61,975 bases of DNA from Octopus bimaculoides (lineage: Eukaryota). The stretch's first letter is position 1, and every line of letters begins with the position of its first letter. A program made the position numbers and the translations under genes. Location of the stretch: assembly GCF_001194135.2 (NCBI RefSeq), contig NC_069005.1, positions 7,536,456-7,598,430 of the forward strand. The letters are read 5' to 3'. This document shows, in pieces, positions 12,072-57,325 of this stretch. The notes beneath the pieces were generated by a model. That model worked only from the letters and a program-made list of their open reading frames with translations. It made no database searches and was not told where the DNA came from.

Positions 12072-12280
12072 CTACAATGGACAATGAACAGAGACAAATA
12101 AACAACAGACAACATGGCTTATAAACTACATACATACATACATATATACACACACAGAGTATGAAATCTCTCTCTCTCTCNNNNNNNNNNNNNNNNNNNN
12201 NNNNNNNNNNNNNNNNNNNNNNNNNNNNNNNNNNNNNNNNNNNNNNNNNNNNNNNNNNNNNNNNNNNNNNNNNNNNNNNN

Positions 12281-25461: not shown

Positions 25462-25493
<32 letters not shown>

Positions 25494-32859: not shown

Positions 32860-33330
32860 ATACAGATGCATAGGCATATGTATTGTAAGTTTACTTCCCA
32901 ACCACATGGTTCTGGGTTCATTCCCACTCCATGGCACCTTGAGCAAATGTCCTGCCCCAGGATGATCCAAAGTCTTGTGAGTGGATTTGGCAGATGGAAA
33001 CTGACAGAAGCCCATCATATATTCTTTTATTTGTTTGTCATTTGGTCGAACAAATCGACCCCAGGACTTACTCTTTGTAAGCCTAGTGCTTATTCTATCG
33101 GTCTCTTTTGCCAAACAGCTAAGNNNNNNNNNNNNNNNNATATATATATATATATATATATATATACGACAGGCTTCTTTCAGTTTCCGTCTAACAAATC
33201 CACTCACAAGGCTTTGGTTGACCCGAGGCTATAGTAGAAGACACTTGCCCAAGGTGCCACGCAGTGGGACTGAACCCGGAACCATGTGGTTGGTAAGCAA
33301 GCTACTTACCACACAGCCACTCCTGTGCCT
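32860..33330 (-). mobile_element. Two SINE family A pieces
   Basis: Family A body and head in reverse orientation, split by a short gap and a TA tract. Confidence 0.8.
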
Positions 33331-34119: not shown

Positions 34120-34272
34120 TTAGCTTCTCTGAACAAAATGCTTGCCACCAGCCTGAATCAGTGCGTCTTTAGATCGAAGGAAATGGTCAACCAGTGGACA
34201 ACAGCTTGTTGTGTTAAAGATGGATCTCACAATGTTTCCTGTTTTCTCTGGAGTCTTTTGTTGAGGAAGCCA
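34120..34272 (-). CDS. FAM227A: FAM227-family gene, terminal coding exon (WLPQQKTPEKTGNIVRSIFNTTSCCPLVDHFLRSKDALIQAGGKHFVQRS*)
   Basis: Acceptor ctcactaatttcag, phase 0. FN....PLV.HFL matches the recalled FAM227 FN..G.SPL..YFL motif. The TAA stop at 34120-34122 is followed 4 nt later by AATAAA. A versus B paralogue assignment is not certain. Confidence 0.75.
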   Translation of the reverse strand, partial: WLPQQKTPEKTGNIVRSIFNTTSCCPLVDHFLRSKDALIQAGGKHFVQRS

Positions 34273-35620
34273 CTGAAATTAGTGAGATTGAACAACATTT
34301 CAGAATTGCTAAATTCACTTAGAACAAACAAATATTGGATAACAGTGTTTTGGAAGCAGGCTTTTTTCTCTGCTTCTTGATGTATAAAAAAAGGTATTGG
34401 CAGTCTTTTTTGGGGGAGTGTGCTAAGAGTCATGGTTCATCATCAGGTGGGCCGCAGTATTAAAAGAAATTCAAGGTAACTTTTACATTGGCATGCCATT
34501 CAGAAAGTCTTGTGAGCCACAGATTATCCACAACTAGCAGAGAGTGCGTTATTGGGGAGAGGGTAGGAGAGGCCAGTAATTACTTGGATGATAAATTTAG
34601 GTTGAAGTGAAATTTATTATCGACATATTTTTCAGGAAAAGGAAAAAAGAACATTAAAAGTATAAAAGATAAAATTATCAAGAAAAAAAAACCCCCATTA
34701 CTACAACAAATAATGGGTGTGGGGTAGGCAGCAGCAGATGGGGAGGGGTGGAGTAACGGGTTGTACACTCCAGGCCAAATGGCATGTTCAGTCGCGCCTC
34801 GTGGGCATGACTACAAAGATGTTGCCGCAGAGAATGGCCAGTGACACCCTGCAAAAGCTATTTCATGTTGCGTGATTCATTTCTCAAAAATTGATTTTGT
34901 AACTGATTGTACTTCTTTTTGCAGACAGGTTTTGTGTCTGTGAGGGAGATTATGGCAAGCAGAGTTATGTATCATTCTTATTTAGGGTTACAAAATAATT
35001 AAACTAGCGTCAACATAGCTTTAATGTACGAAGTAACAAAAATGCAACGACTAGTATTTTTTCGGGCTGTCACCATATCAAGGGAGACAACTCTACATGT
35101 ACTGGCCAAAGAGAGAGTTTATTGCTCGATCAAGAGTTATGTACCTTGGCAACTGACGCTATTTGAGCTGCTTACTTCATTTGTTTAGTGACTGTCTAAT
35201 CGCATAATCTCTTCATCGGAGCAGTGAACAAAATAATTTTGACTCTTTGCGTTCGGAATTCAAATCCTGCCATGATCAACTTTGTTTGGATTCTCCTGGG
35301 ATCGATAAATAAACTTCCAGGTCTAAAAGAAGTGGCCTGTTAGAGCTTTCAACAGGATGCCTTTTCATATTTGTTCTTTAGTGGGGTCCAGGCTTTTCGG
35401 CCAGGTCTTTGGTTTGAAGAGACTTGTCCCAAGTCTCAACAGCCCTAAAAAGAGTCAGAGACACTGGTCTTCTCTCCCTCCCCAAACAAGCAGTTAAACA
35501 GAATAGAAGTTTACCAACTGCAACAACAGCTTCAAATTGGCCCTTTCTTCCAATTTCCTTACCCCTTGTTGCAGTACATTGTCATCAACTACATGCAACA
35601 AAATCTATGTTATGAATCCT

Positions 35621-36012
35621 CAGCAGGAGTGGATGTGTGGTGAGTAGCTTGCTTACGAACCACAAGGTTCCGGGTTCAGTCCCACTGTGTGGCACCTTGG
35701 GCAAGTGTCTTCTACTATAGCCTCGGGCCGACCAAAGCCTTGTGAGTGGATTTGGTAGACGGAAACTGAAAGAAGCCTGTTGTATATATGTATATATATA
35801 TATATATGTATGTGTGTGTATATGTTTGTGTGTCTGTGTTTGTCCCCCCAACATCGCTTGACAACCGATGGTGGTGTGTTTACATCCCCATAACTTAACA
35901 GTTAGGCAACAGTGACTGATAGAATAAGTACTAGGCTTACAAAGAATAAGCCTTGGGGTTGATTTGCTCGACTAAAGACGGTGCTCCAGCATGACTGAAA
36001 CGAATAAAAGAA
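35621..36012 (+). mobile_element. tRNA-derived SINE family A
   Basis: Full head, body and tail. Confidence 0.9.
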
Positions 36013-36621
36013 TATAATTCCTAATGATATTATAAAACAAAAGATTTCAAATTTTGGCACAAGGCCAGCAAGTTTGAGGGAGGAGAAAAGTCAATTACAT
36101 CAACCCCAGTATTCAACTGGTACTTATTTTATCGACCACTCATCTTGGTTCTACAAACTCAATTTTTTTACATGAGATATTTTATGGCATGTGCAAGGCT
36201 CAGTGGTTAGAGTGTCGGGCTCACAATCACGAGGTAGTGAGTTCAATTTCCAAGGCTGTGTTGTATTGTTGAACAAGACACTTCATTTCACATTGCTCTA
36301 GTTCACGCAGCTGTAGAAATGAGTTGTGACATCACTGGTGCCAAGCTGTGTCGGCCTTTACCTTTCTCTTGGATAACATCAGTGCCATGGAGAGGACAGA
36401 CTGGTATGCATGGGCAACTGCTGGTCTTTCTTAAACAACACCGCTTGGACTGGTGCCTCAGAGGGGAACTTTCTAGATGCAATCCCGTTGTCATTCATAA
36501 TTGAAGGGAGTCTTTACTTTTACCATTTTATAACAGGCCAACCCATTTTATTTTCAAATAACCATAACATGGCTGTTTGCCAGCTATGTAGGAGTAAATT
36601 ATGCTGAGAATTCATACTTAC

Positions 36622-36764
36622 TTTGATAGGAAAGTTTCTTGAAGTTTTCCTTTGGCAAAAACTCATTGAGATCAATTGTTTGGTGTAAAAATGTTCCCCT
36701 TTGGTGGCCACATAGGAAGCAAGTATCAAATGGTGGTCCAGCTTTGCTCTGTTTAGTTCAGTAA
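36622..36764 (-). CDS. FAM227A: FAM227-family gene, candidate exon 8 (reading frame ambiguous)
   Basis: Strong acceptor (catttctttataacag) and donor GTAAGT. The 143 nt are open in phase 1 to 0, which bridges exon 7 to the terminal exon, but there is little recognisable homology in that frame. Confidence 0.45.
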
Positions 36765-37046
36765 CTGTTATAAAGAAATGGCAGCAGAGATCAACAAAAT
36801 TCTATTCCAGTAATTTCAACAAGACATCTTATCTTCACTTACAACATATGAACCACAATGATACAACTTTTGTATGGCCAGTCAATCTGTTAGAAATAAC
36901 AGCCAAGTCTCCCTCAAATTACATAGAACTGGTTTAACCCTTTAACATTCAGTTTACATTGTCAAATGTAATGCTTGTTTATTTTTAGAATGACATTGTA
37001 AGGTAAAAGTGAGCAGCCAGTCTTAGCTGGCTTGAACATTAAACAG

Positions 37047-37693
37047 GTATGAGGGTCAGCTGAAAAGTTCATAGGCCGACCAAGATACTCTCATGAAATG
37101 TGATCAAATGAGGTTTATTTTTCAATGTAGTCCTTCTTGCAGTCCACACACTTCTTCCATCAGTGTTGCAGTACTTGGATCCCATTGGTGAAGAAGCTTT
37201 GATCTTGTTGGTCAAAATGGTCATTAGCAAGACCTTGATGTCATCATCCTTGCAAAACTGTCCCCCAGCCAAGTGGTTTTCATGTTGGGGAACTGATGGT
37301 AGTCAGACGGGGCCAAATCGGGAGAAGAGGGACAGTGATCAACCAATTCAAAACCACAGCAGCCATTGAAATGACAGACTTGTGCTGGAGCGTTGACCTG
37401 ATAAAGCAAGACCCCTGTTGTCAGTTTTCCTGGGTGTTTGGTCTTAACAGCCTTTCGTAACTGCCTCAGCAAGTTGGCATAGCACTCTTCATTGATGGTG
37501 TGGCCCTTTTCAAGATAGTCAATAAACACAATGCCTTTTTCGTTACAAAAAACAGAGGCCATCACTTTCCCCACAGATGAAATGACTTTGGCCTTCTTTG
37601 GAGTAGGTGAAGAGAAATGCTTCCACTGCATCGATTGTCTCAAAGAGATGAACCCAACACTCATCCTGGATTAGGAAACATTCAAGGAAAGTA
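37047..37693 (-). mobile_element. Mariner (DD34D) transposase relic, catalytic half plus 3-prime TIR
   Basis: FLECFLIQDECWVH, KVMASVFCNEKGIVFIDYLEKGHTIN and SPDLAPSDYHQF. The terminus TA-TGAGGGTCAGCTGAAAAGT lies at about 37049. The 5-prime part is lost in a GT tract and gap. Confidence 0.9.
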
Positions 37694-37740
37694 GTGTGTG
37701 TGTATGTATATATATATGTATATACCTGTGTATACGTGTT

Positions 37741-37777
<37 letters not shown>

Positions 37778-39120
37778 NNNNNNNNNNNNNNNNNNNNNNN
37801 NNNNNNNNNNNNNNNNNNNNNNNNNNNNNNNNNNNNNNNNNNNNNNNNNNNNNNNNNNNNNNNNNNNNNNNNNNNNNNNNNNNNNNNNNNNNNNNNNNNN
37901 NNNNNNNNNNNNNNNNNNNNNNNNNNNNNNNNNNNNNNNNNNNNNNNNNNNNNNNNNNNNNNNNNNNNNNNNNNNNNNNNNNNNNNNNNNNNNNNNNNNN
38001 NNNNNNNNNNNNNNNNNNNNNNNNNNNNNNNNNNNNNNNNNNNNNNNNNNNNNNNNNNNNNNNNNNNNNNNNNNNNNNNNNNNNNNNNNNNNNNNNNNNN
38101 NNNNNNNNNNNNNNNNNNNNNNNNNNNNNNNNNNNNNNNNNNNNNNNNNNNNNNNNNNNNNNNNNNNNNNNNNNNNNNNNNNNNNNNNNNNNNNNNNNNN
38201 NNNNNNNNNNNNNNNNNNNNNNNNNNNNNNNNNNNNNNNNNNNNNNNNNNNNNNNNNNNNNNNNNNNNNNNNNNNNNNNNNNNNNNNNNNNNNNNNNNNN
38301 NNNNNNNNNNNNNNNNNNNNNNNNNNNNNNNNNNNNNNNNNNNNNNNNNNNNNNNNNNNNNNNNNNNNNNNNNNNNNNNNNNNNNNNNNNNNNNNNNNNN
38401 NNNNNNNNNNNNNNNNNNNNNNNNNNNNNNNNNNNNNNNNNNNNNNNNNNNNNNNNNNNNNNNNNNNNNNNNNNNNNNNNNNNNNNNNNNNNNNNNNNNN
38501 NNNNNNNNNNNNNNNNNNNNNNNNNNNNNNNNNNNNNNNNNNNNNNNNNNNNNNNNNNNNNNNNNNNNNNNNNNNNNNNNNNNNNNNNNNNNNNNNNNNN
38601 NNNNNNNNNNNNNNNNNNNNNNNNNNNNNNNNNNNNNNNNNNNNNNNNNNNNNNNNNNNNNNNNNNNNNNNNNNNNNNNNNNNNNNNNNNNNNNNNNNNN
38701 NNNNNNNNNNNNNNNNNNNNNNNNNNNNNNNNNNNNNNNNNNNNNNNNNNNNTATATATGTATGTGTGTTTGTCCCCCCACCATCGCTTGACAACCGATG
38801 CTGGTATGTTTAGGTCCCCGTAACTTAGCGGTTCGGCAAAAAGAGACCGATAGAATAAGTACTAAGCTTACAAAGAATAAATCCTGGGGGTCACTTTGCT
38901 TGATTAAAGGTGGTGCTCCAGCATGGCCGCAGTCAAATGACTAACACAAGTAAAAGAGAGCAAAGAGAGTTACCCCACGCAAGTATGGAAAAACAGGCAT
39001 TAAAATGATGACAATAATCATTATTTATATCTTGTATTCTACAGCAAATTTCAAAGACGGTGTGACCAGATATGTCCAAGCTATCCACTCTTAAAGCTAC
39101 GCTGTGCATATTATTCTTAC

Positions 39121-39247
39121 CTGTCATCCACAACCATATTAGTTCAATAACTGATTGCTTAAAGACATTGTCAAACTGGCAGTGTGAGTCTGGGAAACTG
39201 TGATGGAATGTTCCATAAACTGCCAGTGACATCAGCTTTGGTAATTC
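39121..39247 (-). CDS. FAM227A: FAM227-family gene, exon 7 (ELPKLMSLAVYGTFHHSFPDSHCQFDNVFKQSVIELIWLWMT), phase 0 to 1
   Basis: AG/GTAAGA sites. It matches the recalled FAM227 segment LP.LL..AVY..F...FP.S...F...FK......LW. Confidence 0.9.
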
Positions 39248-39454
39248 CTGGTCAAAGTGAAAGCAAACTTCTAAGTCAATCGGCCATGCTGTGCCTACAC
39301 ACACACATGCGCAAAAAGACAAACATGATATATATTATATATATAAAAATAAAAAAGTATTATTACTGTTATTTATAGTAATAAGGTGGCTAGCAAGTTC
39401 ACACCATTACAGGCACAATATAAGGTAAACTAAGATTCAATAGGGTATATAATA

Positions 39455-39840
39455 TTGTTGATGGCACTCCGTCGCTTACGACGTCGAGGGTTCCAGTTGA
39501 TCCGATCAACGGAACAGCCTGCTCGTGAAATTAACGTGCAAGTGGCTGAGCACTCCACAGACACGTGTACCCTTAACGTAGTTCTCGGAGATATTCAGCG
39601 TGACACAGTGTGACAAGGCTGACCCTTTGAATTACAGGCACAACAGAAACAGGAAGTAAGAGTGAGAGAAAGTTGTGGTGAAAGAGTACAGCAAGGTTCG
39701 CCACCATCCCCTGCCGGAGCCTCGTGGAGCTTTTAGGTGTTTTCGCTCAATAAACACTTACAACGCCCGGTCTGGGAATCGAAACCGCGATCCTATGACC
39801 GTGAGTCCGCTGCCCTAACCACTGGGCCATTGCACCTCCA
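39455..39840 (-). mobile_element. Young, CpG-intact tRNA-derived SINE family D
   Basis: Minus-strand head TGGCCCAGTGGTTAGG (A box) and GGTTTCGATTCC (B box), followed by a non-tRNA body. Confidence 0.85.
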
Positions 39841-40534
39841 GGGTGCAATTTTAGCACTACTTGCTAAAATCAGAACCAAGGCTCAAAGAACTACCATAAA
39901 CTCATGGTAAAGATACACAGAAGCAATGCAATGAACATATGAGAAACAGGCTTCCCTTTGCATTGAACACATCAGTAAGTAATGAATATTTCAATACCAA
40001 TTGATTTCACATTTTTCATGACAAACATACTCTGCGATCTTCAGTTGGAAATAACATTTTAACATCTATTTAGCAAGTGGTATTATATACCCTATTGAAT
40101 CTTAATTTCCTTTACATATATAAAAGTGAGTTCACAGCTGTAACCTACACCAGTTTCGCATAACCAGCCCACTCATAAGTACCTTGGATCGTAAGGCGAC
40201 ATGCTGTGCTTGAGGAGACCTATTGAGTCAAGTACATCAAAATCAAATCAAATCACAATCAGAATCAAATGGAAATAGCAGTTATGATCCCCGTGCCGGT
40301 GGCACGTAAAAAGCACCAGCCGATCATGGTCGATGCCAGCCCCCTCTGGCCCCTATGCTGGTGGCATGTAAAAAAGCACCCACTACACTCTCAAAGTGGT
40401 TGGTGTTAGGAAGGGCATCCAGCTGTAGAAACTCTGCCAGATCAGACTGGAGCCTGGTGCAGCCTCCTGGCTTCCCAGACCCCAGTCGAACCATCTAACC
40501 CATGCCAGCATGGAAAACAGATGTTAAACGATGA

Positions 40535-40577
<43 letters not shown>

Positions 40578-41152
40578 TACATACACATATATATATAGTG
40601 GTGCTCCAGTATGGCCACAGTCAAATGACTGAAACAAGTAAAAGAATGCACAAACATACACATATAGTTCAAATGTACAGAAAAGAAAAGCCAAAGACAG
40701 GTGAGGTGAACCACAGGTACTTGGGAAGAATGGAAAAGTCTTTGATGTTTCAAGTGTCTATGCTCTTTGACAGAAAGGCATGAGAAGAAAAAAAGAATGG
40801 AGAGAGACAAAAATGTTTTGGGATTAATGGTCTAACATGAAAAAATCCTTATACACACATGCACAGACACACACATACATATATACATACACACACATAC
40901 ATATATACATACGCACACACATATACGTATATATCAGAAAGCAATCTTTATATCCAACTTAACATGGATGTTTGTTAGAGTACCAGGTACTATGTTAGTT
41001 ACCTTGAGAGGACCTTTTCTATTGATACATGATGCAATACATCCACATTAAGTTGGTCCAATTTGAACAAATCTATCTAAATGGCTCAAAACCAACCCTG
41101 CTGGAGTGCAAACTGAAAGGTTGAAAGATCAAATGGAAAGTTCTGGAATTAC

Positions 41153-41296
41153 CTTAAATAAAGTGTCTGCAAAATACTTTTCCCTCCTTGCTAGGTGAAT
41201 GAGGTTCACATAATTGACAGCAACTCGATGGAACAACTTCTGCTGTACAGATAAATCAGGCTGGAAATTGGTGAGAAATAAATACCAGAAGATGTC
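41153..41296 (-). CDS. FAM227A: FAM227-family gene, exon 6, FWWh-domain core (DIFWYLFLTNFQPDLSVQQKLFHRVAVNYVNL...TLFK), phase 0 to 0
   Basis: AG/GT sites, 144 nt. It matches the DSFWW.F...[FY].P....Q..LFDRI...Y signature of FAM227A/B. Confidence 0.92.
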
Positions 41297-41550
41297 CTGT
41301 TGATAGAAACATTGTTTTAATTAAGTCAGGAAAAGAAGATTGCCATATTTTCTGACATACAAGTCAATGTGGTATTTCTATATCCTTAAATGCATATATA
41401 TGATTTTAACAAAACGGAGGTAAAGCAATATATTCACAGACAAAACTTCCAACTACCAACACTTGAGACTCCAACGCCTTCTACTTTTCAACGAAACATG
41501 TTACTCTTTATAAGAGTTCAACGAGTCTACTAATTAATCACACAGGAGTA

Positions 41551-42014
41551 TTAACCCTTTCGTTACCAACCAGGCTGAAACCGGCTCTGGCTCTGAGTAC
41601 AAATATCTTGTTTTCATAAGTTTTGAATTAAAATCTTCCATCAAACCTTTTAGTCACAATTTATGTTCTTAACACTAGCTTAATGATAACTAAGTTATTT
41701 TACTAAATCTTTTGTTATATTTAAAGTAATTGAAAGAAACACAGAGCATCTCAACAGAAATATGGTAACAAAAGGGTTAACAAATGATTAATTTAACCCT
41801 TTTGTTACCAACCCGGCTGAAACTGGCTCTGAATACAAATGTCTTGTTTCCATAAGTTTTGAATTAAAATCTTCTACCAAACCTTAGTCACAATTTATGT
41901 TCCTAACACTAGCTGAATGATAACTAAGTTATTTTACTAAATTCTTTGTTATATTTAAAGTAATTGAAAGAAACACAGAGCATCTCAACAGAAATATGGT
42001 AACAAAAGGGTTAA
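41551..42014. mobile_element. Two adjacent TTAA-flanked piggyBac-type MITEs, family 2 (41555-41776 and 41797-42010)
   Basis: Each reads TTAA-CCCTTT(C/T)GTTACCA ... TGGTAACAAAAGGG-TTAA. The two bodies are highly similar. Confidence 0.85.
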
Positions 42015-42902
42015 TGTCTGTCACCACAACAAGTAAATAGTGAAAACATGAAGTGTAAACATTCAAACATCATCGCTATCTTTCCAAATCCTGCTGCATT
42101 CCACAAGAATACGTTGGTCCTCCAAAGTCGTCATAGTGCATAAGTTGACCTCCCATTTTTGACCATAAATTTGGGTCCGGAAAATTGGACTGAAGCAACA
42201 TGAAACAAAGTGTCTTGCTCAAGAACACAACACATAGCCTGGTCTAGGAATCGAAATCATAATCTTGCAATCATGTGTGCAACTCCGTAGCCCCTGGGTT
42301 ACATGGCTTCAATTCAGCAAGTATGGGAAAACAATTATGAACTGAAGAAGGAGTTACAAAAAATTATGTAGTAACAACTGTGTATTTCTAGCAAGTATGA
42401 AATAACAACCATGGTTAACCCTTTAGCATTTAAACTAGCCATATTTGGCCCAAATATTCTACCTGCTTTTGCCTCTCATACCTATGCTACAATGTCAATG
42501 TCATTCTAAGAATAAGCAATCACATCATCAAAATCTTGAAGCTACAAGATAATGCATGATTAATTCAAAACAATGTGAATAAATATTACTTTTGACAGAG
42601 TAATCGGAATGCAAGAGGGTTGAACCAGCCATATCCAGCCAAGATATTCTACCTGGTTTATTTTCAAATCAGCCAGATCTAACTTCTCACACCTACCCTA
42701 CAATGTCATTCTAAAAATAAACAATCACATCATCGAAATCTCGAAGCTGAGATAATACATAATTAATTCAAAACAATGTGAATAGATAAACATTACATTT
42801 GACAAAGTCATTTGAATACTAAAAGGTTAACTCATATTTCCAGGAGAAGGGAAATGAAAACTTGACATTAATAAAAATTTAAAAAACTGAACAGAACTGC
42901 AC

Positions 42903-42962
42903 CTGTAATATGTCTTGGCATCTTTTGGAATATAGAATTTTCTCAAACGTTGGGCGCTGGAG
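42903..42962 (-). CDS. FAM227A: FAM227-family gene, exon 5 (LQRPTFEKILYSKRCQDILQ), phase 0 to 0
   Basis: Long polypyrimidine acceptor and CAG|gtgcag donor. It aligns with the LEKFL.S.....IWL segment preceding DSFWW. Confidence 0.85.
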
Positions 42963-43315
42963 CTGTAAATAGCAAAAAAAAATTAAGGTTAAAAGACAGA
43001 GACAAACAAATAAACAAAAGAAAAATGCAAAAAGTAGAGAAAAGAAAATGGAAGTTGAAAGACAACCAGATACCAAAGTTAATTGACCAACTTTGAACAC
43101 CCAACCAGAACAACTGACCTCCATAGAAAAAACAAAAAACCCTGGAACCATGAAATAACCTTTTAGCAGCTTATCATACATCAATATTGGGAAAATTCAC
43201 AACCTTCTGTATCATTAAACCACTATTGTTCCTGAAAGTTGTTTTCTATTTCTTCTACAGACTGTTTGAAGCTCACTATGTTCCTACACCTTGATCCTTA
43301 GATCTTACCTTTATA

Positions 43316-43442
43316 TACAGGGTGTCCACAAAGTCTGGGTACATGAGGATTAACACATACTTTAAGAAGTTATTGTTTCTTATATTTAATTGTTTATGTT
43401 ATGATTTTATTTACTCCATGTACCCAGACTTTGTGGACACCC

Positions 43443-43446
<4 letters not shown>
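43316..43446. mobile_element. Tc1/mariner-type MITE (127 bp) with 28-bp perfect TIRs
   Basis: TA-CAGGGTGTCCACAAAGTCTGGGTACATG ... CATGTACCCAGACTTTGTGGACACCCTG-CA. The right TA is mutated. Confidence 0.85.
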
Positions 43447-43488
<42 letters not shown>

Positions 43489-44645
43489 CTCAATCAATAA
43501 CCTTACAAAGTAGATGCAATGGAACAACCATATCATTGACCTGGTCACAGTTGTGTCACACCAACTTTAGTGTGAAAAAACTGACTGCAATTAATGGCTT
43601 CAAACTTTGGCATAAAGCATGAATAATAAAGAGAGGTGGATGGCAAAGATGGTTGGTGATTTAGGAGGAACACAGCAGTATAAAAAGGAGACAGCATTAG
43701 GCAATAAGTGGCTAAATAATTAGAGCATCTTACAAAATGCTTTGTGGTCTCTACTTGTAGCACCTTCACATTCTGTGTTCAAATCCTGCTGAGGTTGATT
43801 TCTGTTTTACTTTCTTCTGGGGTCAATAATATCATTTAAATACTGGGTTCACATCATTGACTATCCTCCTCCCACAAGACTGGGCCTTTGTGCCAATATT
43901 TAGGGTGGTGACTTGATTGAAATGGTAAACTGACAAGATGTGTTGATGTTCTTTGGTCCTAGGTCATCCCTGGTCAAGAAAATATATGACCAAAGACATT
44001 TCAGCCATGACCATCCTGTTTCTTTTTTTTTTCCAGGTACAGGTATGGATGTGGAGTAAAAAATTCACTTTCCAACCACATGGCTTTGGATTCAGTCCCA
44101 GTGCATGGCACCTTGGACAAGTTTCTTTCACTCTGTCCCTGGACCAATGGAAGCTTTGTGAGTAGATTTAGTAGATGGAAACCGAAAGAAGCCTAATGTT
44201 TGTGTTTATGTTCCCGTAACTTAGTGGTTCAGCAAATGAAACCAATAGAATAAATGCTAGGCTTAAAACAAAAGTACTAGGGTCAATTTGTTCAAATAAA
44301 ACTCTTCAAGGCAGTGCTCCAGCATGGCCATAGTCCAATGACTGAAACAAGTAAAAGATTGGAATCACATTATCTAATGGGTTTTCCTTTTTAAGATTGA
44401 TAGGGGTGAGTCAGAGGAATTTTGGCTGTTTGACCTGCTACAAATAGCAGCCAAATCCTTCCTCAAATCACAACCTACTGACTTACAAAAACACAGAAGG
44501 TCACAGTGCATATTGTAGTCCTTACTATACAAAAAGACATTATGGTCACTGCTGGAATGACAATTGATCAATAGGTCTGCTGGATCAAGGCTGACCCAGG
44601 GCTAAGCAATAACAACAACATTTAAGGCACAAAGAATTTACTGAC

Positions 44646-44759
44646 AGAACCAATTTTGGAATAATGAGCGTGAAGAGCCTTCTTCAACATTTCTTTTGGT
44701 TGGATGTTGTAGGGTAAAGATGTCATTTGGTGCTTCTGAAAACCAGGGAAGACATATGT
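44646..44759 (-). CDS. FAM227A: FAM227-family gene, exon 4 (TYVFPGFQKHQMTSLPYNIQPKEMLKKALHAHYSKIGS), phase 0 to 0
   Basis: Acceptor ctcttttccag and donor gtcagt. It matches the recalled FPGF....T.LP motif. Confidence 0.85.
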
Positions 44760-46519
44760 CTGGAAAAGAGAATGAGAAATATACACATAAACAGCAGATG
44801 CATGCATAAATACATCATCATCGAACATCCATTTCTATGCTGACATGGGCTGGATGGCTTGACAGGTACTGGCAAGGCCAGGGGCCACACCAAGTTCCAT
44901 AGTCTGTTTTGGCATGGTTTCTATGGCTAGATATCCTTCTTAATGCCAATTATTTTACAGAGTGAACTGGCTGCTTTTTACATGGCACCTTGCTTTTAGG
45001 AAATATATAATACAAAACCACAATAAGACAGAANNNNNNNNNNNNNNNNNNNNNNNNNNNNNNNNNNNNNNNNNNNNNNNNNNNNNNNNNNNNNNNNNNN
45101 NNNNNNNNNNNNNNNNNNNNNNNNNNNNNNNNNNNNNNNNNNNNNNNNNNNNNNNNNNNNNNNNNNNNNNNNNNNNNNNNNNNNNNNNNNNNNNNNNNNN
45201 NNNNNNNNNNNNNNNNNNNNNNNNNNNNNNNNNNNNNNNNNNNNNNNNNNNNNNNNNNNNNNNNNNNNNNNNNNNNNNNNNNNNNNNNNNNNNNNNNNNN
45301 NNNNNNNNNNNNNNNNNNNNNNNNNNNNNNNNNNNNNNNNNNNNNNNNNNNNNNNNNNNNNNNNNNNNNNNNNNNNNNNNNNNNNNNNNNNNNNNNNNNN
45401 NNNNNNNNNNNNNNNNNNNNNNNNNNNNNNNNNNNNNNNNNNNNNNNNNNNNNNNNNNNNNNNNNNNNNNNNNNNNNNNNNNNNNNNNNNNNNNNNNNNN
45501 NNNNNNNNNNNNNNNNNNNNNNNNNNNNNNNNNNNNNNNNNNNNNNNNNNNNNNNNNNNNNNNNNNNNNNNNNNNNNNNNNNNNNNNNNNNNNNNNNNNN
45601 NNNNNNNNNNNNNNNNNNNNNNNNNNNNNNNNNNNNNNNNNNNNNNNNNNNNNNNNNNNNNNNNNNNNNNNNNNNNNNNNNNNNNNNNNNNNNNNNNNNN
45701 NNNNNNNNNNNNNNNNNNNNNNNNNNNNNNNNNNNNNNNNNNNNNNNNNNNNNNNNNNNNNNNNNNNNNNNNNNNNNNNNNNNNNNNNNNNNNNNNNNNN
45801 NNNNNNNNNNNNNNNNNNNNNNNNNNNNNNNNNNNNNNNNNNNNNNNNNNNNNNNNNNNNNNNNNNNNNNNNNNNNNNNNNNNNNNNNNNNNNNNNNNNN
45901 NNNNNNNNNNNNNNNNGTTCCATTTTTACAGGGGTTGCTGTTCTGGTAAAGGAAATATGACAATTGGATTAGCTGGTTGATTAGACTGGTAACAGGTAAT
46001 AAACTCGTTTATGTTATTTTAACTGTAATTATTTCACTGATTTCTCACCTTGGGCAGCAGCCATGTTAGGGACTGCCTTGGAGGGTTTTCAGTCAATGAA
46101 ATCAACCCCACTACTTATTCTATCACTACCCCTACATAGACAAACTAATGAAAACCAGCTGCCAAGTAGTGTCACATGAAGGCAAGCTACAAAGAGAGAG
46201 AGAGAGAGAAACGTGCACACGAACACACGCANNNNNNNNNNCCAGACCAGGCTGTGCATTGTGTTCTTGAGCAAGACACTTTATTTCACGTTGCTCCAGT
46301 TCACTCATCTGTCGAAATGATTAGTAACATCACTGGTGTTAAGCTGTATTGGCCCCTTTGCCTTTCCCTTGGATAACATCAGTTGCGTGCAGAGAGGAGG
46401 CTGGTATGCATGGGCAACTGTTGGTCTTCCACAGACAACCTTGCCTGAACTTGTGCCCTGGAGAGGAAACTTCCTAGGTGCAATTCCATGGTCATTCATG
46501 ACCGAAGGGGGTCTTTTAT

Positions 46520-46550
<31 letters not shown>

Positions 46551-47014
46551 ATGCAAGTGTATGTCTGTGTGTGATGGGCTTCCACAATTACCATCTATCA
46601 ATTTCACACACATGGAATTGGTCAATCTGAAGCTATGGTAAAAGTAATTTGGTCAAAGTGCCAATTGTCCAACATAAATCATAGCAGAGTACGACTGAAC
46701 TCAAAACCATATGGTTTTGAAGTGTATTTCTTAACTACAGGGCCATAACTGCAACTATGTTATGGGCGAATCCTGTACACCCCTACGTGACTGAAAGTGG
46801 ACTAAACAGATTTGAATAAATAAAGAACTGTGTGAACTGTCAATGGCAGTTGACAGCATTGGTCGTCTGTGTTGGTTATTGTGTTAGTTTAATATCATAA
46901 CTACGTTGGAGTAGTACAGAGTGTGTTCTGTGTGAACATAATTATTCTGCGATAGGTTATTCTAGATAACCATATCCAAATATTTATTTGGGCAATACTA
47001 TTCTTACACCTGAT

Positions 47015-47406
47015 GTGTACAGAGTGGCTGTGTGGTAAGTAGCTTGCTTACCAACCACGTGGTTCCGGGTTCAGTCCCACTGCGTGGCATCTTGGGCAAG
47101 TGTCTTCTACTATGTCCTCGGGCCGACCAAAGCCTTGTGAGTGGATTTGGTAGACGGAAACTGAAAGAAGCCCATCGTATATATGTATATATATGTGTGT
47201 GTGTCTGTGTTTGTCCCCCTAGCATTGCTTGACAACTGATGCTGGTGTGTTTATGTCCCCGTCACTTAGCGGTTCGGCAAAAGAGACCGATAGAATAAGT
47301 ACTAGGCTTACAAAGAATAAGTCCCGGGGTCGATTTGCTCGACTAAAGGTGGTGCTCCAGCATGGCCGCAGTCAAATGACTGAAACAAGTAAAAGAGTAA
47401 AGAGAG

Positions 47407-47408
<2 letters not shown>
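47015..47408 (+). mobile_element. tRNA-derived SINE family A, near-consensus copy
   Basis: Complete head, body and tail. Further copies lie at about 38753-38970, 44036-44360 and 48518-48905(+), and at 56220-56520 and 56638-57030(-). Confidence 0.9.
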
Positions 47409-47473
<65 letters not shown>

Positions 47474-47880
47474 GTAAAGGCTGTTTACCAATATAATGTG
47501 GCTGTCCTGGAAAGGACAATATCACTGTTGCTTTAGCCCCAAGAAACATCATTTCTAGCTGTCTATATGATACAATATCTGTGTCCTTATATTTTCAAAC
47601 AGGGAGTTCAGCACTCCCACCTGGCACAAAACAACATCTGTGGACTAGTTTCTGGGTTATTGCCTTTATCAATAACACAGAATGGCGTAGCATTACACTG
47701 AGTATATAAAAAGGATAAAATATATTACTGATTTTTAGGGAATGAAAAGAAGTGAAAGGTCACACCATATTTGGGATCAAAATAGATTTAATTGAAAGGT
47801 GGGGGGTCGCTTCATATTGGAAATCACAAATCTTTTAGAACTATTGAGTTACATTAACAGAACATAGGAACTCTACTCAC

Positions 47881-47936
47881 ATTATTGAAACCAGTGTTCT
47901 GGTCTTCAGTTCCCAGGAAACTGCAGTTTGGTAAAT
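47881..47936 (-). CDS. FAM227A: FAM227-family gene, exon 3 (LPNCSFLGTEDQNTGFNN), phase 1 to 0
   Basis: Acceptor gttttaccccag and donor GTGAGT. The 56 nt give the required phase change. Confidence 0.75.
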
Positions 47937-48628
47937 CTGGGGTAAAACATGAAGGCAAGAGGAAGTGAGTGAGGGATAGGAAATGAGAGAGAGGGGGAGT
48001 AAGAGAAAGATGGAGATAGGAAGTGAGAGAGACAGAAAGAGACGGAGAGAGAGAGAGTCAAGAAGGTAAAACATGAGAAACAAAGAGTTTTTAGTTAAAC
48101 AACGCTGTCAGATACAAATATGAAGAATACCTCACAAATGTTCTAAACTTTGTATACATACACACACAAACTCGGGCACATACTCATGCCAGACACAAGA
48201 GAAATTTAATACATTCCAGGATTATCAAAGATATGCTTCAATTTTTCTAAAATTGAATGAAATAAATAAAAATGTTGAATACACACAAACTTGTACATAA
48301 TTAACAAAATAAATAATAATAATCCTTTCTACTAAAGGCACAAGGCCTGAAATTTGGTGGGAGGCAGTAAGTCAATTACATCAACCCCAGTGCATAACTG
48401 GTACTTAATTTATCAACCCCGAAAGGATGACAGGCAAAGTCGACCTCAGCGGCATAATAATAATAGTAGCAATATAATTATAATCACACATTTGGTGTGT
48501 GAATTTTGGCCCATCCTGGATTCAGTCCCACTGCGTGGCACCTTGGGCAAGTGTCTTCTATTATAGCTTCGGGCTGACCAAAAACTTGTGAGTGGATTTG
48601 GTAGACGGAAACTGAAAGAAGCCCGTCG

Positions 48629-48665
<37 letters not shown>

Positions 48666-49192
48666 GTATATGTATATGTGTGTGGGTGTTTGTGTGTCTG
48701 TGTTTGTCTCCCCATCATCGCTTGACATCTGATGCTGGTGTGTTTACGTCCCCATAACTTAGCGGTTCGGCAAAAGAGACCGATAGAATAAGTACTAGGC
48801 TTCCAAAGAATATGTCCTGGGGTTGATTTGCTCGACTAAAGGCGGTGCTCCAGCATGGCCGCAGTCAAAAGACTGAAACAATTAAAAGAGTAAAGAGAGT
48901 AAAGAATATATAATATAGGTTTGTTTCATTTGAGGTATCATTAAATTTAGGGTGGCAAGAATGGTTCATAAAATATATGTAGGGTTTCCATAATTTTTTG
49001 AAAAATTCTAAGAGCTGCTCATTATTGAAATGGCAGGGATTCCAAAACTTTTGCAAAGTCTGGGACTAAGTCAATAATTTATTCCCCAACCTCATTTCTA
49101 TATCTTGCCTCTTGCAACAATTTCAATACAATACCACCCAACCATTTTTGCTCGGAATAAAAGGAAAACAAACATGTTTCTCAAAGACTTAC

Positions 49193-49333
49193 TCAATCTT
49201 GTATTTTTACTGCTTGAACCTTGAGCTCCAGCAGTTGCTTTCTTTTCAAAGACCAAAGGCAGATGGTATCGTAGTTCTTCGTTGTAATGCTTGAGATCTT
49301 GGTTCAAACCATCAACAGAGCCAACACTATATG
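49193..49333 (-). CDS. FAM227A: FAM227-family gene, exon 2 (YSVGSVDGLNQDLKHYNEEL...NTRL), phase 1 to 1
   Basis: Acceptor ctttttcctaaatgacactccag and donor GTAAGT. GSVDGLNQ resembles the FAM227A GSMHQVNQ motif. Confidence 0.8.
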
Positions 49334-49659
49334 CTGGAGTGTCATTTAGGAAAAAAGACGATTCCAAAATCATGGTGGAGTGGACTGAGAAAGATGGATG
49401 ACCTGATGGTTGTATCGACATCAAAGTCATAATTACATGGTGAAACGTTTTGGCAACTCACTGTCTACAACAGAAATGCCCAACCACTATGGGCTGGGCA
49501 TTGTTGGGGACCAAGCCGCACAAAAAAAAAAAAATTACTTCTACTTTATTGACTATTGCAGTCTGCTCTGCGTTTTACATTACATATGTAAGGTAATCTT
49601 CAAGTTTAGGGTGGTAAAAAAAAGTAAATAAAAATATACAAGGGAAATAACTTAACGTC

Positions 49660-50062
49660 TTACTCGTATCATCCGTGCTACTCTGAAATGTGTGTTGTTG
49701 TTTTTTTTTTAGCTGTTTATAAATAAATCACACACGTGACTAGATATCATAGTACCGGCTGAGAGATCGAAAATCCCTCATGGAAGACCGGCTGCACAAC
49801 AACTTATTGTTCCTCAAAATGAAATCCTCACTCGTCATTTAATATTAGAAGAATATTGGAATATTAGTGAATTATGCAGCAGTTCAAGACACAAAATGTT
49901 GGAACGATGTGCGGGCCGTCGGCTTATTAGGAATAAGTTTATCTGCGAGGATTGTTTAGTACCATGCGGACTTGTTAAAAAAAGCAAAAAAACACGTGTA
50001 TGATTTATGTATAAACAGCTAAAAAAAACACCACATTTCAGAGTAGTACAGATTATAAGAAT
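49660..50062. mobile_element. About 400-bp MITE with about 75-bp imperfect TIRs
   Basis: ctactctgaaatgtg...tagctgtttata.ataaatca.acacgtg at the left end is mirrored at the right end. Confidence 0.7.
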
Positions 50063-50919
50063 TGGATGAGATATGACGGCTCGGCCGTCTCTCCCCAGTT
50101 CTTATATTAATCATTAAAATCCTGAAATACAACAACACAAGGGATAACGGTAACGACAGATCAATAGTTTATTCTAGGTTAGTGTAGAGCCGTTTCGTTC
50201 CTGGGTGAATAGGCATGCCGCTAGAATACCAAAGAAGCTTCGACCACATGTCGGGGTCGAGTTGGGACATACGTGTTGTCGCCACGGCTGCTGGATGGAA
50301 AAGAGGGCGAACGCTATTGCTTTCTCTCCACTACAAGATAATACTAGTAAGACGTTAAGTTATTTCCCTTGTATATATATTTATTTACTTTTTTTACCAC
50401 CCTAAACTTGAAGATTACCGTCTGCAGTATTATTATGAAATAGAAGTGGATTTGGCTTTCAAATAGTTGCCGTGACACTTCTATTTCAACACAATCTCAA
50501 GTGAAGACAGTAACCAAACAAGTGCGACTCTGATATGATAGGAAATTTATTAAATTAAACTAAGGTTAGAGGGAGGACAAGATGCATTTCAAAAGTTGGG
50601 ATGCATGCCCATCCAGAATGTCATGGTCTACAAATTAGTATATGAAAAAAAAAGTTTAAGGTGCTTTTTGTAACTTCTTCGTAATTAAAACGACTTTTAT
50701 GTCTAAAAATTCTTTGAAATAATTAATTACGTGTTTAAAATAAAAACTATGAAAATCGTGAAATCTTCAAACATAAATATTTTCTTTGGATAACAGAAAA
50801 AAAGGTAAATATATAAATAAAAAAAACCTTGCGTTGCAACTTTGGCCAGCTCCAAGATGATTCTGTCCTTGAAGAAATTCTCGTAAATAAACTAAATTTA
50901 AGACTTCAAGAAAGGATAC

Positions 50920-51043
50920 GTGGTTTAGTATTAATGATATCTTCTTGGAGTTTCTGTCTTGCTTTCTTTTCTGCTTCCGTTTCGACGTATTTCTGATCAA
51001 TAATGTGCAGAACCATCGAAGTTCCTCTTAGAGCCGTGGTCAT
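50920..51043 (-). CDS. FAM227A: FAM227-family gene, first coding exon (MTTALRGTSMVLHIIDQKYVETEAEKKARQKLQEDIINTKP), ends in phase 1
   Basis: ATG at 51043, with an alternative at 51016. The only usable donor before the in-frame stop is C|gtatcc, which is phase 1 and matches exon 2. Confidence 0.65.
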
Positions 51044-51484
51044 ATTTAATATGTTTGATTTGCTACAAACAGTAGCCAAATATCCCTCTCAAATTCCCGT
51101 CTTTAGAGGAAAATACTACTACTAATAATAATAAAACTACAGAAAGAAAAGTACATTGTCAACGGTTATAGTCCATGACATAGAAAAAGACAAGACCTGC
51201 TCAGCCAACAATGAGAAAATCTGTTCGATGTGACCAAGGAGACTAAACAATTTACTCAAATTAATTTACATACAAACTAGCAAATTAAAAAAAAAACTTA
51301 AATCTGCTTCCACGAAAAAAGAAAGTCCTTTTAAAGTTTAGCTTTAATCAATAGTCTAAAGTAAATATATTCGTTTTATTTTATGTGTGTGTGTGTAAGT
51401 AAAAAAAAAAAAAATCTCCCGGAATACGAAAATAAATGTGTAGATTCTTGACCCTCTTGTGTTGCTGACTCTGCAGTTTTTCAC

Positions 51485-51493
51485 AAAATGGCG
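51485..51493 (+). promoter_or_regulatory. YY1-type motif (AAAATGGCG) at the probable CBY1 5-prime non-coding exon (about 51450-51600, donor CTG|gtatgt at 51601)
   Basis: Motif match in a locally CpG-retaining segment between the divergent genes. The exon limits are inferred. Confidence 0.45.
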
Positions 51494-51679
51494 TTACGAA
51501 GTTGTTTGTCTCTGTTCGATATTTAGGGAATAAATCAATTGACTCTTTGTGAATTAAGGAAAGGAATAAACATCTTCGTTTCTACTGGTGAAAATATCTG
51601 GTATGTTTTATCGATTCTTTTGTTGTTTTTGTTATAGAGAGGGAAATCTCTCTCACTCTGTCTGCCGTCAAGGTATATA

Positions 51680-51693
51680 GTTGCCTTGACAAC
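51680..51693. promoter_or_regulatory. RFX X-box (GTTGCCTTGACAAC)
   Basis: It has 12 of 14 matches to the GTTGCCATGGCAAC consensus and lies between two divergent genes, one of which is a known ciliary gene. Confidence 0.65.
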
Positions 51694-53108
51694 CGCTTAA
51701 CAGGTCTGAAGCTTAAGTTTCTATCATTCAACGAACTCGCCTAGTTTGTTCGATTTGCATTCATTCCAACCGTGACTGTCATGTCCGCACGCACACACGA
51801 GTGCCGTAATCGTTAGTCCTATGGCTTGTCGGGAATTAAAACAAAAGTGGCCAGACATACCTCCTTTTTGAACTTGTCACCGTCTTGAATGCTGTATGGA
51901 TGAGTGTGTATACACCGTTTCTAAAGAATAGTCAGGTATTATCAAGAGCGGCAAAACCTGTAATTTCTTCGGGTGCACATGTTTTGAGCATCGTAGATAA
52001 CTTGGCGATAAAATAAAATGTGAACGAAGAAGGGGAGACAGGCCTCTACTTTTTATTTTTAAGCTTTTGAAAACTTTTTCAGACTTATGTTATAAACCTC
52101 TGAGATTATTTGATACCAAATAATAAATGACTAAATAAAGTTAATATTTTTGTGTTTTTTGAATTTGTAAACCTTTCGCGCTGTAATATTTATAGTTTCA
52201 ACATACGATAGAAAGGCGGAGGCAAAGAATACGCACACCACCCGTTTTCGGCGTAACACTAACCCTAAACACCGGATGTGCAGATTCTTTACTTTCGCCC
52301 GATGGAAGTACAATTTCAAGTTGTCTGAAAGGGTGATTCTCTAAAAATATGTGAAACATGAATATGAAAATAAATAAATAATAAATAACTTTCGATAAAA
52401 TGTTATTTTCAAGACTGAAGAATTGCGAAAAAGTGTGGCTCGAAAGATTTTTTTTTTTTTTTTTCTCCAGAATTGTTGTAGGATCATCTACGGTGTTTAG
52501 AGCAGACACATCCGCAGAAATAATGTCGGTTATGTCTTTTAGCGCTCTAGATAATTTCCGATACTATTCTGTAGGTGCACACACACACACATACATATAT
52601 ATAGTCAGTAGTTCATATCTCTGAAAAAGAATCATACACTAAGCCATTAGAGCGATAATACATCTTTTTAGGAAGTTAAAGCCAGTCAGAGAGTGACCAT
52701 TGGTTATGCACCTATAAAGCATTTAGCAGCATAGGTGACTGGTCAGACTCAAATGGCTGAAAGCACATAACCAAGCTCTAATTGTAGAAAATACCTGTGG
52801 AAGGGGTAGATTCAAGATGAGACGAAGTGGTGAGAAAGGATCTTCAGACGTTGGGCCTCACAGAGGGGATGACTAGGGACCAGGAGATGCGATGATTTGC
52901 TAAGACTCATCTTGAGAAGACACATCAGGTTAAGTAAAATTGCTGTCTCCCAAACATACAGGCTTGTCCTTTCAGGTACCGATGCCACTTAAAAAGCACC
53001 CATGCCGGTGCTGCATTGACACACCTGTGCTGGTAGCTCGTTTATAATCCTGGTAACCCACACCAAATTTATGTATTTCTTTTTTTTTTTTTCTTTTATA
53101 GAACCAAG

Positions 53109-53289
53109 ATGCCATTATTTGGAAATAAATTTTCTCCCAAGAAGATTCCTAATCGAAGAAGCCAGTCTTTAAGCAATCTAAGCTTGGATTCATCTCAAGC
53201 AAAAGAGGAATTTGGGATTGAATGTGGACCGGCCAGAATAAACTTGGGGGGAAGCGAAATGACTTTTGAAGACGGTCATTGGATTCCTG
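53109..53289 (+). CDS. CBY1: Chibby homolog, coding exon 1 (MPLFGNKFSPKKIPNRRSQSLSNLSLD...FEDGHWIP), ends in phase 1
   Basis: Clear similarity to human MPFFGNTFSPKKTPPRKSASLSNL...FENGQWI. An acceptor (ttttatag) 8 nt upstream of the ATG implies an upstream non-coding exon. Confidence 0.95.
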
Positions 53290-54520
53290 GTAATTAGNNN
53301 NNNNNNNNNNNNNNNNNNNNNNNNNNNNNNNNNNNNNNNNNNNNNNNNNNNNNNNNNNNNNNNNNNNNNNNNNNNNNNNNNNNNNNNNNNNNNNNNNNNN
53401 NNNNNNNNNNNNNNNNNNNNNNNNNNNNNNNNNNNNNNNNNNNNNNNNNNNNNNNNNNNNNNNNNNNNNNNNNNNNNNNNNNNNNNNNNNNNNNNNNNNN
53501 NNNNNNNNNNNNNNNNNNNNNNNNNNNNNNNNNNNNNNNNNNNNNNNNNNNNNNNNNNNNNNNNNNNNNNNNNNNNNNNNNNNNNNNNNNNNNNNNNNNN
53601 NNNNNNNNNNNNNNNNNNNNNNNNNNNNNNNNNNNNNNNNNNNNNNNNNNNNNNNNNNNNNNNNNNNNNNNNNNNNNNNNNNNNNNNNNNNNNNNNNNNN
53701 NNNNNNNNNNNNNNNNNNNNNNNNNNNNNNNNNNNTATATATATATATATATATATATATGCAATTGTGTATGTATATAATATATATGTTTATGTATGTA
53801 TATATATATCTATACATATAAATTTGACATGGGCAATTCTTTCTTATCTTGGAATTCACGGTCAAACAGCTGGGTGGAATTGTGTGAAAAATTACACAGA
53901 TGTGTAGAATGATCCGGTGGTGTTGCTGGGCATTGTATTCTTCATAGCTCCCATGGTTACCAAGATAATCTACTATAATAATACTCTTGTGTTTATGAAT
54001 GAGAAAGGAAGGGGTGATGTCATACTTGGTAGTGGGATGATGAAAATTGTACGTTGAAAAAAATAAATCAAACAGCGTTTCAACTCTGTATGAATATATG
54101 TGTGCGTGTGTGTATATAAAAGAGAGGTATGTGAATGTGTTTGTGTTTATTTTTTGATTTGGTTGTTTTTTTTTTTTTTTGTTGGTCAGTTATTTTTGTT
54201 AACGAAGACTTGATAAATGAAATAGCCAAATCACTCACCTTTACCTCACTGTTTTCCCCATACTGATATTGTCCTTGTCTCTGTCAGTGAGAGAGCCACA
54301 AAAAGTGTGTTTACAGCATGGCCTTTTACCAATCCTTCCACCCCTCCTCTACTCAACGGCTAGAATTTGCTCAATGATTCAGTTTAATCAAAAAGACAAA
54401 ATGCTGTTGTTGATGCTCCTGTTATATAAATCAGATATTTGCAATGATTTGATTAGTACCATAATTAGTACCATAATTAGTACCATTGATTAGTACCATA
54501 ATTTCTTCCAATGCATGCAG

Positions 54521-54636
54521 CCAGTGGCTTTGGTGCTGCCAGCCATCAAGAACTGATGATTCTACGTAAGAAAAATGAGCAACTACTCAATGAAAACAAT
54601 TTTCTGAAGATAAAATGTGAAACTTTGTTAGACATG
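54521..54636 (+). CDS. CBY1: Chibby homolog, coding exon 2 (SGFGAASHQELMILRKKNEQLLNENNFLKIKCETLLDM), phase 1 to 0
   Basis: AG/GTAAGT sites. The coiled coil matches LRRRNQQLEEENNLLRLKVDILLDM. Confidence 0.95.
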
Positions 54637-55620: not shown

Positions 55621-55704
55621 CTGACTGAAACAACTGTGAACTCTCACCTTCAAATTCAAGAAATTACCCAACTAAAGAACATGGTACGAAGTAAAAACAG
55701 ATGA
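55621..55704 (+). CDS. CBY1: Chibby homolog, coding exon 3 (LTETTVNSHLQIQEITQLKNMVRSKNR*)
   Basis: T-rich acceptor, with the TGA stop at 55702-55704. The total product is 126 aa. Confidence 0.95.
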   Translation: MTETTVNSHLQIQEITQLKNMVRSKNR

Positions 55705-56875: not shown

Positions 56876-57325
56876 CGACGGGTTTCTTTCAGTTTCTGTC
56901 TACCAAATCCACTCACAAGGCTTTAGTCAGCCTGAGGCTATAGTAGAAGACACTTGCCCAAGGTGCAACGCAGTGGGACTGAACCTGGAACCATGTGTTT
57001 AGGATACAAGCTTCTTACCACACAGCAACCACACCAAGAAAGAGACTGTTAGAATAAGTAGAAGGCTTAAAGGAACAGATGCAGGGGTCAGTTCATTCAA
57101 CCGTTGTATGGTGTAATCAATTAGTCTGCTTGATATTTCAAATGAACAATCAACACATTAAATAATGAAGCTGTTGAGTTTGGAAAAAATCATGAGAAGA
57201 AACCTGAGGTTTCGGGATTGTCCTTAGTCTGAGAGAAATAAAAAAAAAAAAAAGGTCTTTTTTGTTATTTTCTTTTCTCTTTTCTGGTTCTAGTCATTGG
57301 CCAGCAACAATGTTGGGCTGTTACT

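Follow-up and report, generated by a model that had tools for sequence, protein, structure and literature searches.

The best described relatives of the system considered here are ciliary genes controlled by RFX transcription factors. The X-box of the Drosophila gene Cby is conserved, and dRfx mutants show down-regulation of the gene (PMC2375033), human CBY1 falls within an RFX2-motif cilium-assembly module (PMC5514134), and across the metazoans the Rfx motif ranks first at the promoters of multiciliated-cell genes, where it is found within ±100 bp of the transcription start site (TSS) (PMC5245798). In human, a CpG has been annotated to both CBY1 (plus strand) and FAM227A (minus strand) (PMC11505613), and FAM227A has been reported to be enriched in ciliated cells (PMC12991005). 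Our literature searches found nothing linking FAM227 to RFX and no publication on human FAM227A/CBY1 as an RFX-controlled bidirectional promoter. To our knowledge, the FAM227 proteins have no known function. Here we describe a divergent FAM227/CBY1 gene pair, and the X-box between its start codons, in a window of 61,975 nt from Octopus bimaculoides (NC_069005.1, positions 7,536,456 to 7,598,430, forward strand); positions below are those of this whole window unless another locus is named.

Two genes of the window stand head to head, the divergent arrangement given in the initial annotation: a FAM227B-like gene, translated on the minus strand from an ATG at 51043, and CBY1, translated on the plus strand from an ATG at 53109. 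On balance, we take the interval to be the shared 5' regulatory region of this FAM227B-like(-)/CBY1(+) pair, with an evolutionarily retained RFX-type X-box. Within it, the X-box is tied more closely to CBY1 than to the FAM227B-like gene.

The X-box, GTTGCCTTGACAAC, occupies 51680-51693 and reads as the inverted repeat GTTGCC TT GACAAC. The CBY1 ATG is 1,416 nt downstream of it, and 637 nt separate it from the FAM227B-like ATG. The X-box matches the restricted Drosophila consensus GYTRYY N1-3 RRHRAC (taken from PMC2375033) exactly, on both strands, and is one mismatch away from the classical consensus GTNRCC-NN-RGYAAC, which agrees with its initial description as palindromic and near-consensus. 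The two other elements named with it, the YY1-type motif AAAATGGCG at 51485-51493 and the splice donor CTG/GTATGT with its GT at 51601-51602, are likewise where they were annotated. An alternative plus-strand donor for CBY1 exon 1, AAG/GTATAT (GT 51673-51674), is present 7 nt 5' of the X-box.

The whole of the intergenic region aligns with O. vulgaris at ~87-92%, with the X-box (L006 9328-9341), the YY1-type motif and both donors identical, and this species is too close for a strong test of conservation. In the case of Argonauta hians, blastn against the locus gives alignment limited to the coding exons and a global MAFFT alignment misplaced the X-box; the comparison was therefore made by local alignment, controlled by shuffling. 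The X-box belongs to a non-coding stretch of ~240-330 bp that is collinear with the region upstream of Argonauta CBY1. The first conserved block, 51460-51506 on the plus strand (L001 5695-5741; score 21, shuffle mean 12.4 and maximum 16), holds the YY1-type motif and, apart from flanking changes, is identical in O. vulgaris; the second, 51592-51649 on the plus strand (L001 5838-5896; score 19, reached by 7 of 200 shuffles), holds the 51601 donor; and the third, 51674-51700 (L001 5896-5923; score 16, shuffle maximum 15), holds the X-box. A fourth block, ATTCATTCCAACCGTGACTGTCATGTC at 51759-51785 on the plus strand (L001 5927-5952), is weak, its score of 13 being reached by 10 of 100 shuffles. 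The blocks share order and strand in octopus and Argonauta, and their offsets agree to ~25 nt. The alignment ends at 51460, with no match further upstream toward the FAM227B-like gene.

The Argonauta X-box is GTTACCTTGACTAC (L001 5902-5915), and it has in common with the octopus the TT spacer, the GAC deviation from the classical consensus and the flank CC(A)GCTTAA. Its two substitutions are at degenerate positions of the consensus, an R and an N, which is the pattern that would be expected of a constrained site. As an X-box score is still reached by approximately 20% of octopus sites given two random mutations, this is modest motif-specific evidence beyond the conservation of the block itself. 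The positional evidence is strong, since the best match in a 20 kb search space directly follows the preceding block. This context credibly raises the X-box above chance, the motif counts discussed below notwithstanding. The conservation in other cephalopods on which the initial annotation had hung its proposal is thus borne out, with an identical site in O. vulgaris and one kept at the collinear position in Argonauta.

The neighbouring elements are kept less well. The YY1-type motif is present and is identical in O. vulgaris, but in the aligned Argonauta site, AATATGGTG, CG has become TG. A second Argonauta AATATGGCGTCAC is found 255 nt further upstream of this aligned site. It may be noted that Argonauta carries AATATGGYGTCAC twice, at L001 5466-5478 and 5720-5732, 255 nt apart and in equal orientation upstream of the X-box, and that an (ACT)n microsatellite separates the two copies; in the octopus, the matching interval contains a short (ACT)n, at 51114-51130. 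Within the whole window, AANATGGCG occurs once, at 51485, against 0.92 copies expected. The "good donor" at 51601 is present and kept in O. vulgaris, as is that at 51673, but it is lost in Argonauta, where the sequence is TTG/GGGAAT. The sole good Argonauta donor, GAA/GTAAGT, lies 13 nt 5' of its X-box.

Other candidate features of the interval were rejected. Forkhead motifs at 51503 and 51566 show no conservation in Argonauta, and no Foxj1-type motif is conserved beside the X-box in the octopus/Argonauta comparison. An upstream open reading frame (ORF) from the ATG of AAAATGGCG would be 12 codons long in Octopus and 6 codons long in Argonauta, and as its peptide is not conserved it was not accepted as coding. 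Rfam and repeat scans found no non-coding RNA family or repeat in the interval.

The head-to-head FAM227/CBY1 pair itself is widespread and deeply conserved. It is present in O. vulgaris, where the ATGs are 5.75 kb apart; in the annelid Owenia, where a gene encoding an FWWh-domain (FAM227) protein is head to head with CBY1; and in the amphioxus Branchiostoma, where there are 743 bp between the ATGs and the pair is followed by Tom22. In Branchiostoma lanceolatum (L005 1-14988) the order is FWWh(-), Chibby(+), Tom22(-). We take the human order, FAM227A-CBY1-TOMM22, to be as in Branchiostoma, so that the microsynteny would be wider than the pair. In Haliotis, CBY1 instead has a TOP3-like upstream neighbour within 10 kb, which is transcribed in the same direction. 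That the pair has been kept from amphioxus and annelid to octopus and human suggests regulatory constraint. It is conceivable, though we think it rather improbable, that this is an ancient bilaterian pair held together by one RFX-controlled ciliary promoter domain reading both genes. If so, the FWWh/FAM227 proteins would work as partners with Chibby, either at the basal body or at the transition zone.

A CpG-undepleted domain at 49400-52600, with an observed/expected ratio of 0.7-1.4, spans both 5' ends. In the flanking gene bodies (48.0-49.4 and 52.6-56.2 kb) the ratio is 0.07-0.5, and the domain is presumed to be a germline-unmethylated promoter domain. Within it, the first conserved block is a candidate for the CBY1 core promoter or for the start of the non-coding exon 1. 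YY1-type ATGGCG elements are commonly just downstream of TSSs. With the Argonauta donor placed 13 nt before its X-box, this makes the best exon-1 model one in which CBY1 exon 1 would run from near the first block to 51600 or 51672. Both predicted TSSs would then be between 51044 and ~51600, at most ~560 bp apart. Octopus and Argonauta do not have their candidate exon-1 donors at homologous sites, and since in addition the 51601 donor is not kept in the latter, the exon-1 boundary is a tentative one.

The X-box is a plausible RFX site, at which we infer binding. The proposed mechanism is that an RFX1/2/3-type dimer would bind the inverted repeat GTTGCC-TT-GACAAC, one half-site of which is perfect and the other weaker, of GTTGTC type. 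Binding within ~200 bp of the CBY1 start would raise CBY1 transcription in cilium-building cells. Since the site is symmetrical and inside a single CpG-undepleted promoter domain, an effect on the FAM227B-like gene, whose ATG is 637 bp away, is also possible; action in both directions, as put forward in the initial annotation, is something that we purely infer.

There are a number of observations that weigh against a shared region with a retained X-box. With respect to the motif, GAC replaces GGC in the octopus site, and in the 62-kb window matches to the classical consensus with up to one mismatch number 5 against 5.12 expected, with 7 against 6.6 expected for the restricted consensus, both at chance level; the consensus fit by itself is therefore a weak feature. 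The tolerance of the motif to random double mutation, given above, is a further point of this kind. With respect to position, under the best exon-1 model the X-box would probably lie 8-80 nt inside CBY1 intron 1, ~+200 from the predicted TSS. In Argonauta, tblastn and tblastx detected no FAM227 exon within 10 kb at the locus, or within 5.7 kb of the promoter block, although this negative is weak because FAM227 evolves fast; by tblastx the octopus and Argonauta loci have in common only the CBY1 exons and a SINE-like repeat.

The comparison with other phyla is also unfavourable. There is no restricted-consensus X-box in the 743-bp amphioxus FAM227/CBY1 intergenic region, where all that occurs is half-sites and sequences fitting the most degenerate consensus, and in Haliotis an X-box with one mismatch is found 1.3 kb into CBY1 intron 1. 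A perfect Haliotis X-box (L002 13542) lies across an edge of the second CBY1 coding exon and was rejected as evidence. Two perfect X-boxes in Owenia (L004 19538-19551 and 20283-20296) were likewise set aside, being the arms of a transposon-like inverted repeat of ~750 bp in a 24-kb CBY1 intron. Perfect X-box matches can thus ride on mobile elements and hence be irrelevant. The initial annotation had looked to conservation of the X-box in other phyla, and this was not clearly seen at the amphioxus, Haliotis and Owenia loci, the Haliotis site being ambiguous. The link to RFX comes instead from the published work.

It is a possibility to be taken seriously, although we would not put it first, that the X-box serves CBY1 only and that the FAM227B-like gene has its own core promoter near 51043-51300, in which case the head-to-head order would be kept by shared open chromatin or by lack of rearrangement. 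The X-box is ~640 bp from the FAM227B-like ATG, no more than ~200 bp from the CBY1-side blocks and beside the CBY1 exon-1 donors; the Argonauta conservation stops at 51460, short of the FAM227B-like side, and the failure to find a FAM227 exon near the Argonauta block points the same way, as does the fact that the documented RFX target is Cby/CBY1 and not FAM227. Set against this are the retention of the head-to-head pair in amphioxus, annelid, octopus and human, the expression of FAM227A in ciliated cells (PMC12991005), and the single CpG-undepleted domain over both starts.

A second alternative, which is about as doubtful, concerns the start of CBY1 and not the function of the X-box. The CBY1 TSS would here be at ~51700-51710, just 3' of the X-box, and the conserved 240 bp would be the proximal promoter (~-245 to -5). 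The X-box would be core-proximal, splicing would use neither the 51601 nor the 51673 donor, and the true donor would be downstream, for example the CAG/GTATTA near 51937. Conservation 5' of the TSS is usual for proximal promoters, and here the detectable conservation mostly ends past the X-box; the donors upstream of the X-box are, as described, non-homologous between Octopus and Argonauta. The sequence TATATAG abuts the X-box on its 5' side in octopus, but its Argonauta counterpart is TATTTGG, in which the TATA-like element is not kept. The usual position of YY1-type ATGGCG motifs, just downstream of TSSs, also speaks against a start this far 3' of the first block, and Argonauta has no good donor between the X-box and the SINE-like insertion. 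A start immediately beside the X-box would fit with the peak of Rfx motifs within ±100 bp of the TSS (PMC5245798). The initial annotation placed the X-box between the two genes; in either exon-1 model it is predicted to be outside the interval between the two TSSs.

Least probable of the alternatives, in our view, is that the likeness to an X-box is incidental and that the block is kept as the CBY1 5' untranslated exon, donor region and core promoter, or as the site of another factor. One candidate factor is of the NR5A/ERR type, for which a monomer site can be read on the reverse strand as TCAAGGCAA in Octopus and TCAAGGTAA in Argonauta, 8/9 against what we take to be the nuclear-receptor consensus, TCAAGGTCA. 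The chance-level motif counts and the 20% of double mutants retaining an X-box score are compatible with this, conservation is equal in the flanking bases TAT..G and CC(A)GCTTAA, which are not part of the X-box, and the GAC deviation, common to both octopods, also fits another recognition sequence; however, both substitutions fall at degenerate X-box consensus positions, the half-site symmetry and 2-nt spacer are kept, CBY1 is orthologous to a proven RFX target, and the nuclear-receptor reading has to allow a mismatched core position in each of the two species.

The identity of the plus-strand gene as CBY1, of the Chibby family, is indicated by Pfam. The first coding exon, 53101-53289 on the plus strand, has the acceptor TTTTATAG/AACCAAG, its ATG at 53109 and the donor CCTG/GTAATT, and matches Chibby (PF14645) with E = 5e-17; coding exon 2, 54521-54636 on the plus strand, matches with E = 3e-10, its splice sites being read from the sequence. 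The two scores are 62.4 and 40.5 bits against a gathering cutoff of 24.8. The last coding exon, with the stop codon, was placed at 55621-55704 on the plus strand by reading of the sequence and comparison with Argonauta. The protein of 126 amino acids (aa) has 88% identity to CBY1 of Argonauta hians, the first coding exon having 77% nucleotide identity and exon 2 having 95% (tblastx). Because the acceptor directly precedes the ATG, there must be a non-coding CBY1 exon 1 upstream of 53101, and the non-coding exon of the initial annotation is upheld to this extent. One Logan transcript contig from another cephalopod, containing CBY1 with a retained intron, has neither exon 1 nor the X-box. An assembly gap (53298-53735) starts 9 nt past the donor of the first coding exon; the window has 17 runs of N in all, totalling 5,170 nt. 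The sequence is that of a gapped scaffold; a chromosome-level assembly, which includes the contig of the newer FAM227B model described below, also exists.

The minus-strand gene is a member of the FAM227/FWWh family. Its exon 1, 50922-51043 on the minus strand, runs for 41 codons from the ATG at 51043 to the donor CCAC/GTATCC, and is a 100% match to residues 1-41 of XP_014787777.1 and of the O. vulgaris protein. The other exons, all on the minus strand, were placed approximately, within 34123-49335, by tblastn of the O. bimaculoides and O. vulgaris proteins on the window: 49335-49194, 47931-47875, 44750-44640, 42955-42885, 41295-41140 (with the FWWh motif DIFWYLFL), 39245-39120, 36768-36622 and 34275-34123. 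The gene is thus mapped from 51043 to ~34.1 kb, with identity of up to 100%. A composite query recovered three proteins, XP_014787777.1 (FAM227B-like, O. bimaculoides), O. vulgaris FAM227B and a shorter O. bimaculoides model. All three are named FAM227B or FAM227B-like and have the precomputed FWWh domain PF14922, and the first two both start MTTALRGTSM. Amphioxus FWWh exons match the minus strand of the window at 44777-44637 and 41296-41264.

Of the 122 positions of exon 1 of the FAM227B-like gene, 6 differ between the two Octopus species. Each of these is a third-codon position and every difference is synonymous; the exon is under purifying selection, and the start at 51043 is real. The minus-strand gene start of the initial annotation is therefore the true start of the annotated FAM227B-like protein. 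The 45-aa ORF of exon 1 alone has no relatives in a word-indexed protein search and no Pfam match, and Pfam found nothing in three-frame translations of the minus strand over 47.5-51.1 kb, the FWWh exons being located further away. A newer RefSeq FAM227B model for O. bimaculoides (199 aa) starts near 44.7 kb, omits exon 1 and reads through the terminal intron.

Beyond the 3' end of the FAM227B-like gene, at 12000-32000, is ~20 kb of a degenerate array with a 4-nt period, (TTCG/TACG)n, with N gaps. The array flips strand, with an AT skew of approximately -0.4 at 13-16 kb and +0.5 at 17-31 kb, and it yields long spurious ORFs (TYVRSFVR...). The SINE-like repeat, which in translation contains ...GFGRPEAIVEDTCPRCHAVGLNP..., has at least six copies in the window (6600-6700, 33195-33310, 35655-35760, 47035-47155, 48515-48610 and 56895-56995) and is also present in Argonauta hians at L001 14338-14457. 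By appearance only, the ORFs 10786-11250 and 37224-37664, both on the minus strand, resemble fragments of mariner/Tc1-type transposases (e.g. ...DLAPSDYHQFPNMK...).

If the favoured reading is correct, and the interval is a shared 5' regulatory region with a retained X-box, then the control of Chibby by RFX and the X-box, which was demonstrated in Drosophila and inferred in human, would reach a lophotrochozoan, supporting this as ancestral bilaterian wiring. Shared regulation with Chibby would also give rise to the hypothesis that the FAM227 proteins act in ciliogenesis. For the annotation of the octopus genome, the disputed first exon of the FAM227B-like gene is confirmed and a search area is indicated for exon 1 of CBY1, which is non-coding and has not been annotated. 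Of more use is a by-product, the old FAM227/CBY1 head-to-head pair, which was the less expected result.

Among known systems, one that is comparable in mechanism is that of Caenorhabditis elegans, where the X-boxes of DAF-19 are found at ciliary promoters as 14-bp imperfect inverted repeats with a 2-nt spacer, and where variants with a GTTGTC half-site are functional. Those X-boxes belong to compact promoters, in which the ATG follows ~100 bp downstream, and the likeness is one of mechanism and not of orthology of the site. The closest system by gene is Drosophila chibby (CG13415/Cby; Laurencon et al. 2007, PMC2375033), an orthologous gene with a GYTRYY N1-3 RRHRAC X-box that lies upstream of the ATG. 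In that study, conservation of the X-box between divergent species of one clade was the basis of prediction, and such conservation is present here. Unlike Drosophila Cby, for which RFX dependence was measured in mutants, the octopus site is known from sequence alone. It is also 1.4 kb from the ATG, probably in intron 1, unlike that of Drosophila, since there are a non-coding exon and an intron in between. As in the multiciliated-cell promoters of vertebrates and other metazoans (Quigley & Kintner 2017, PMC5245798), there is an RFX motif near the 5' end of a cilium/basal-body gene, a logic kept throughout the animals; the evidence in those cases is ChIP-seq, H3K4me3 and mapped TSSs, and in the octopus it is the DNA sequence. 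The presence of an X-box at the octopus orthologue of an already reported RFX target is a solid but ordinary finding. The human FAM227A/CBY1 pair at 22q13.1 has the same gene families on opposite strands with adjacent 5' ends, and differs in its paralogue, the octopus gene being named FAM227B-like by NCBI.

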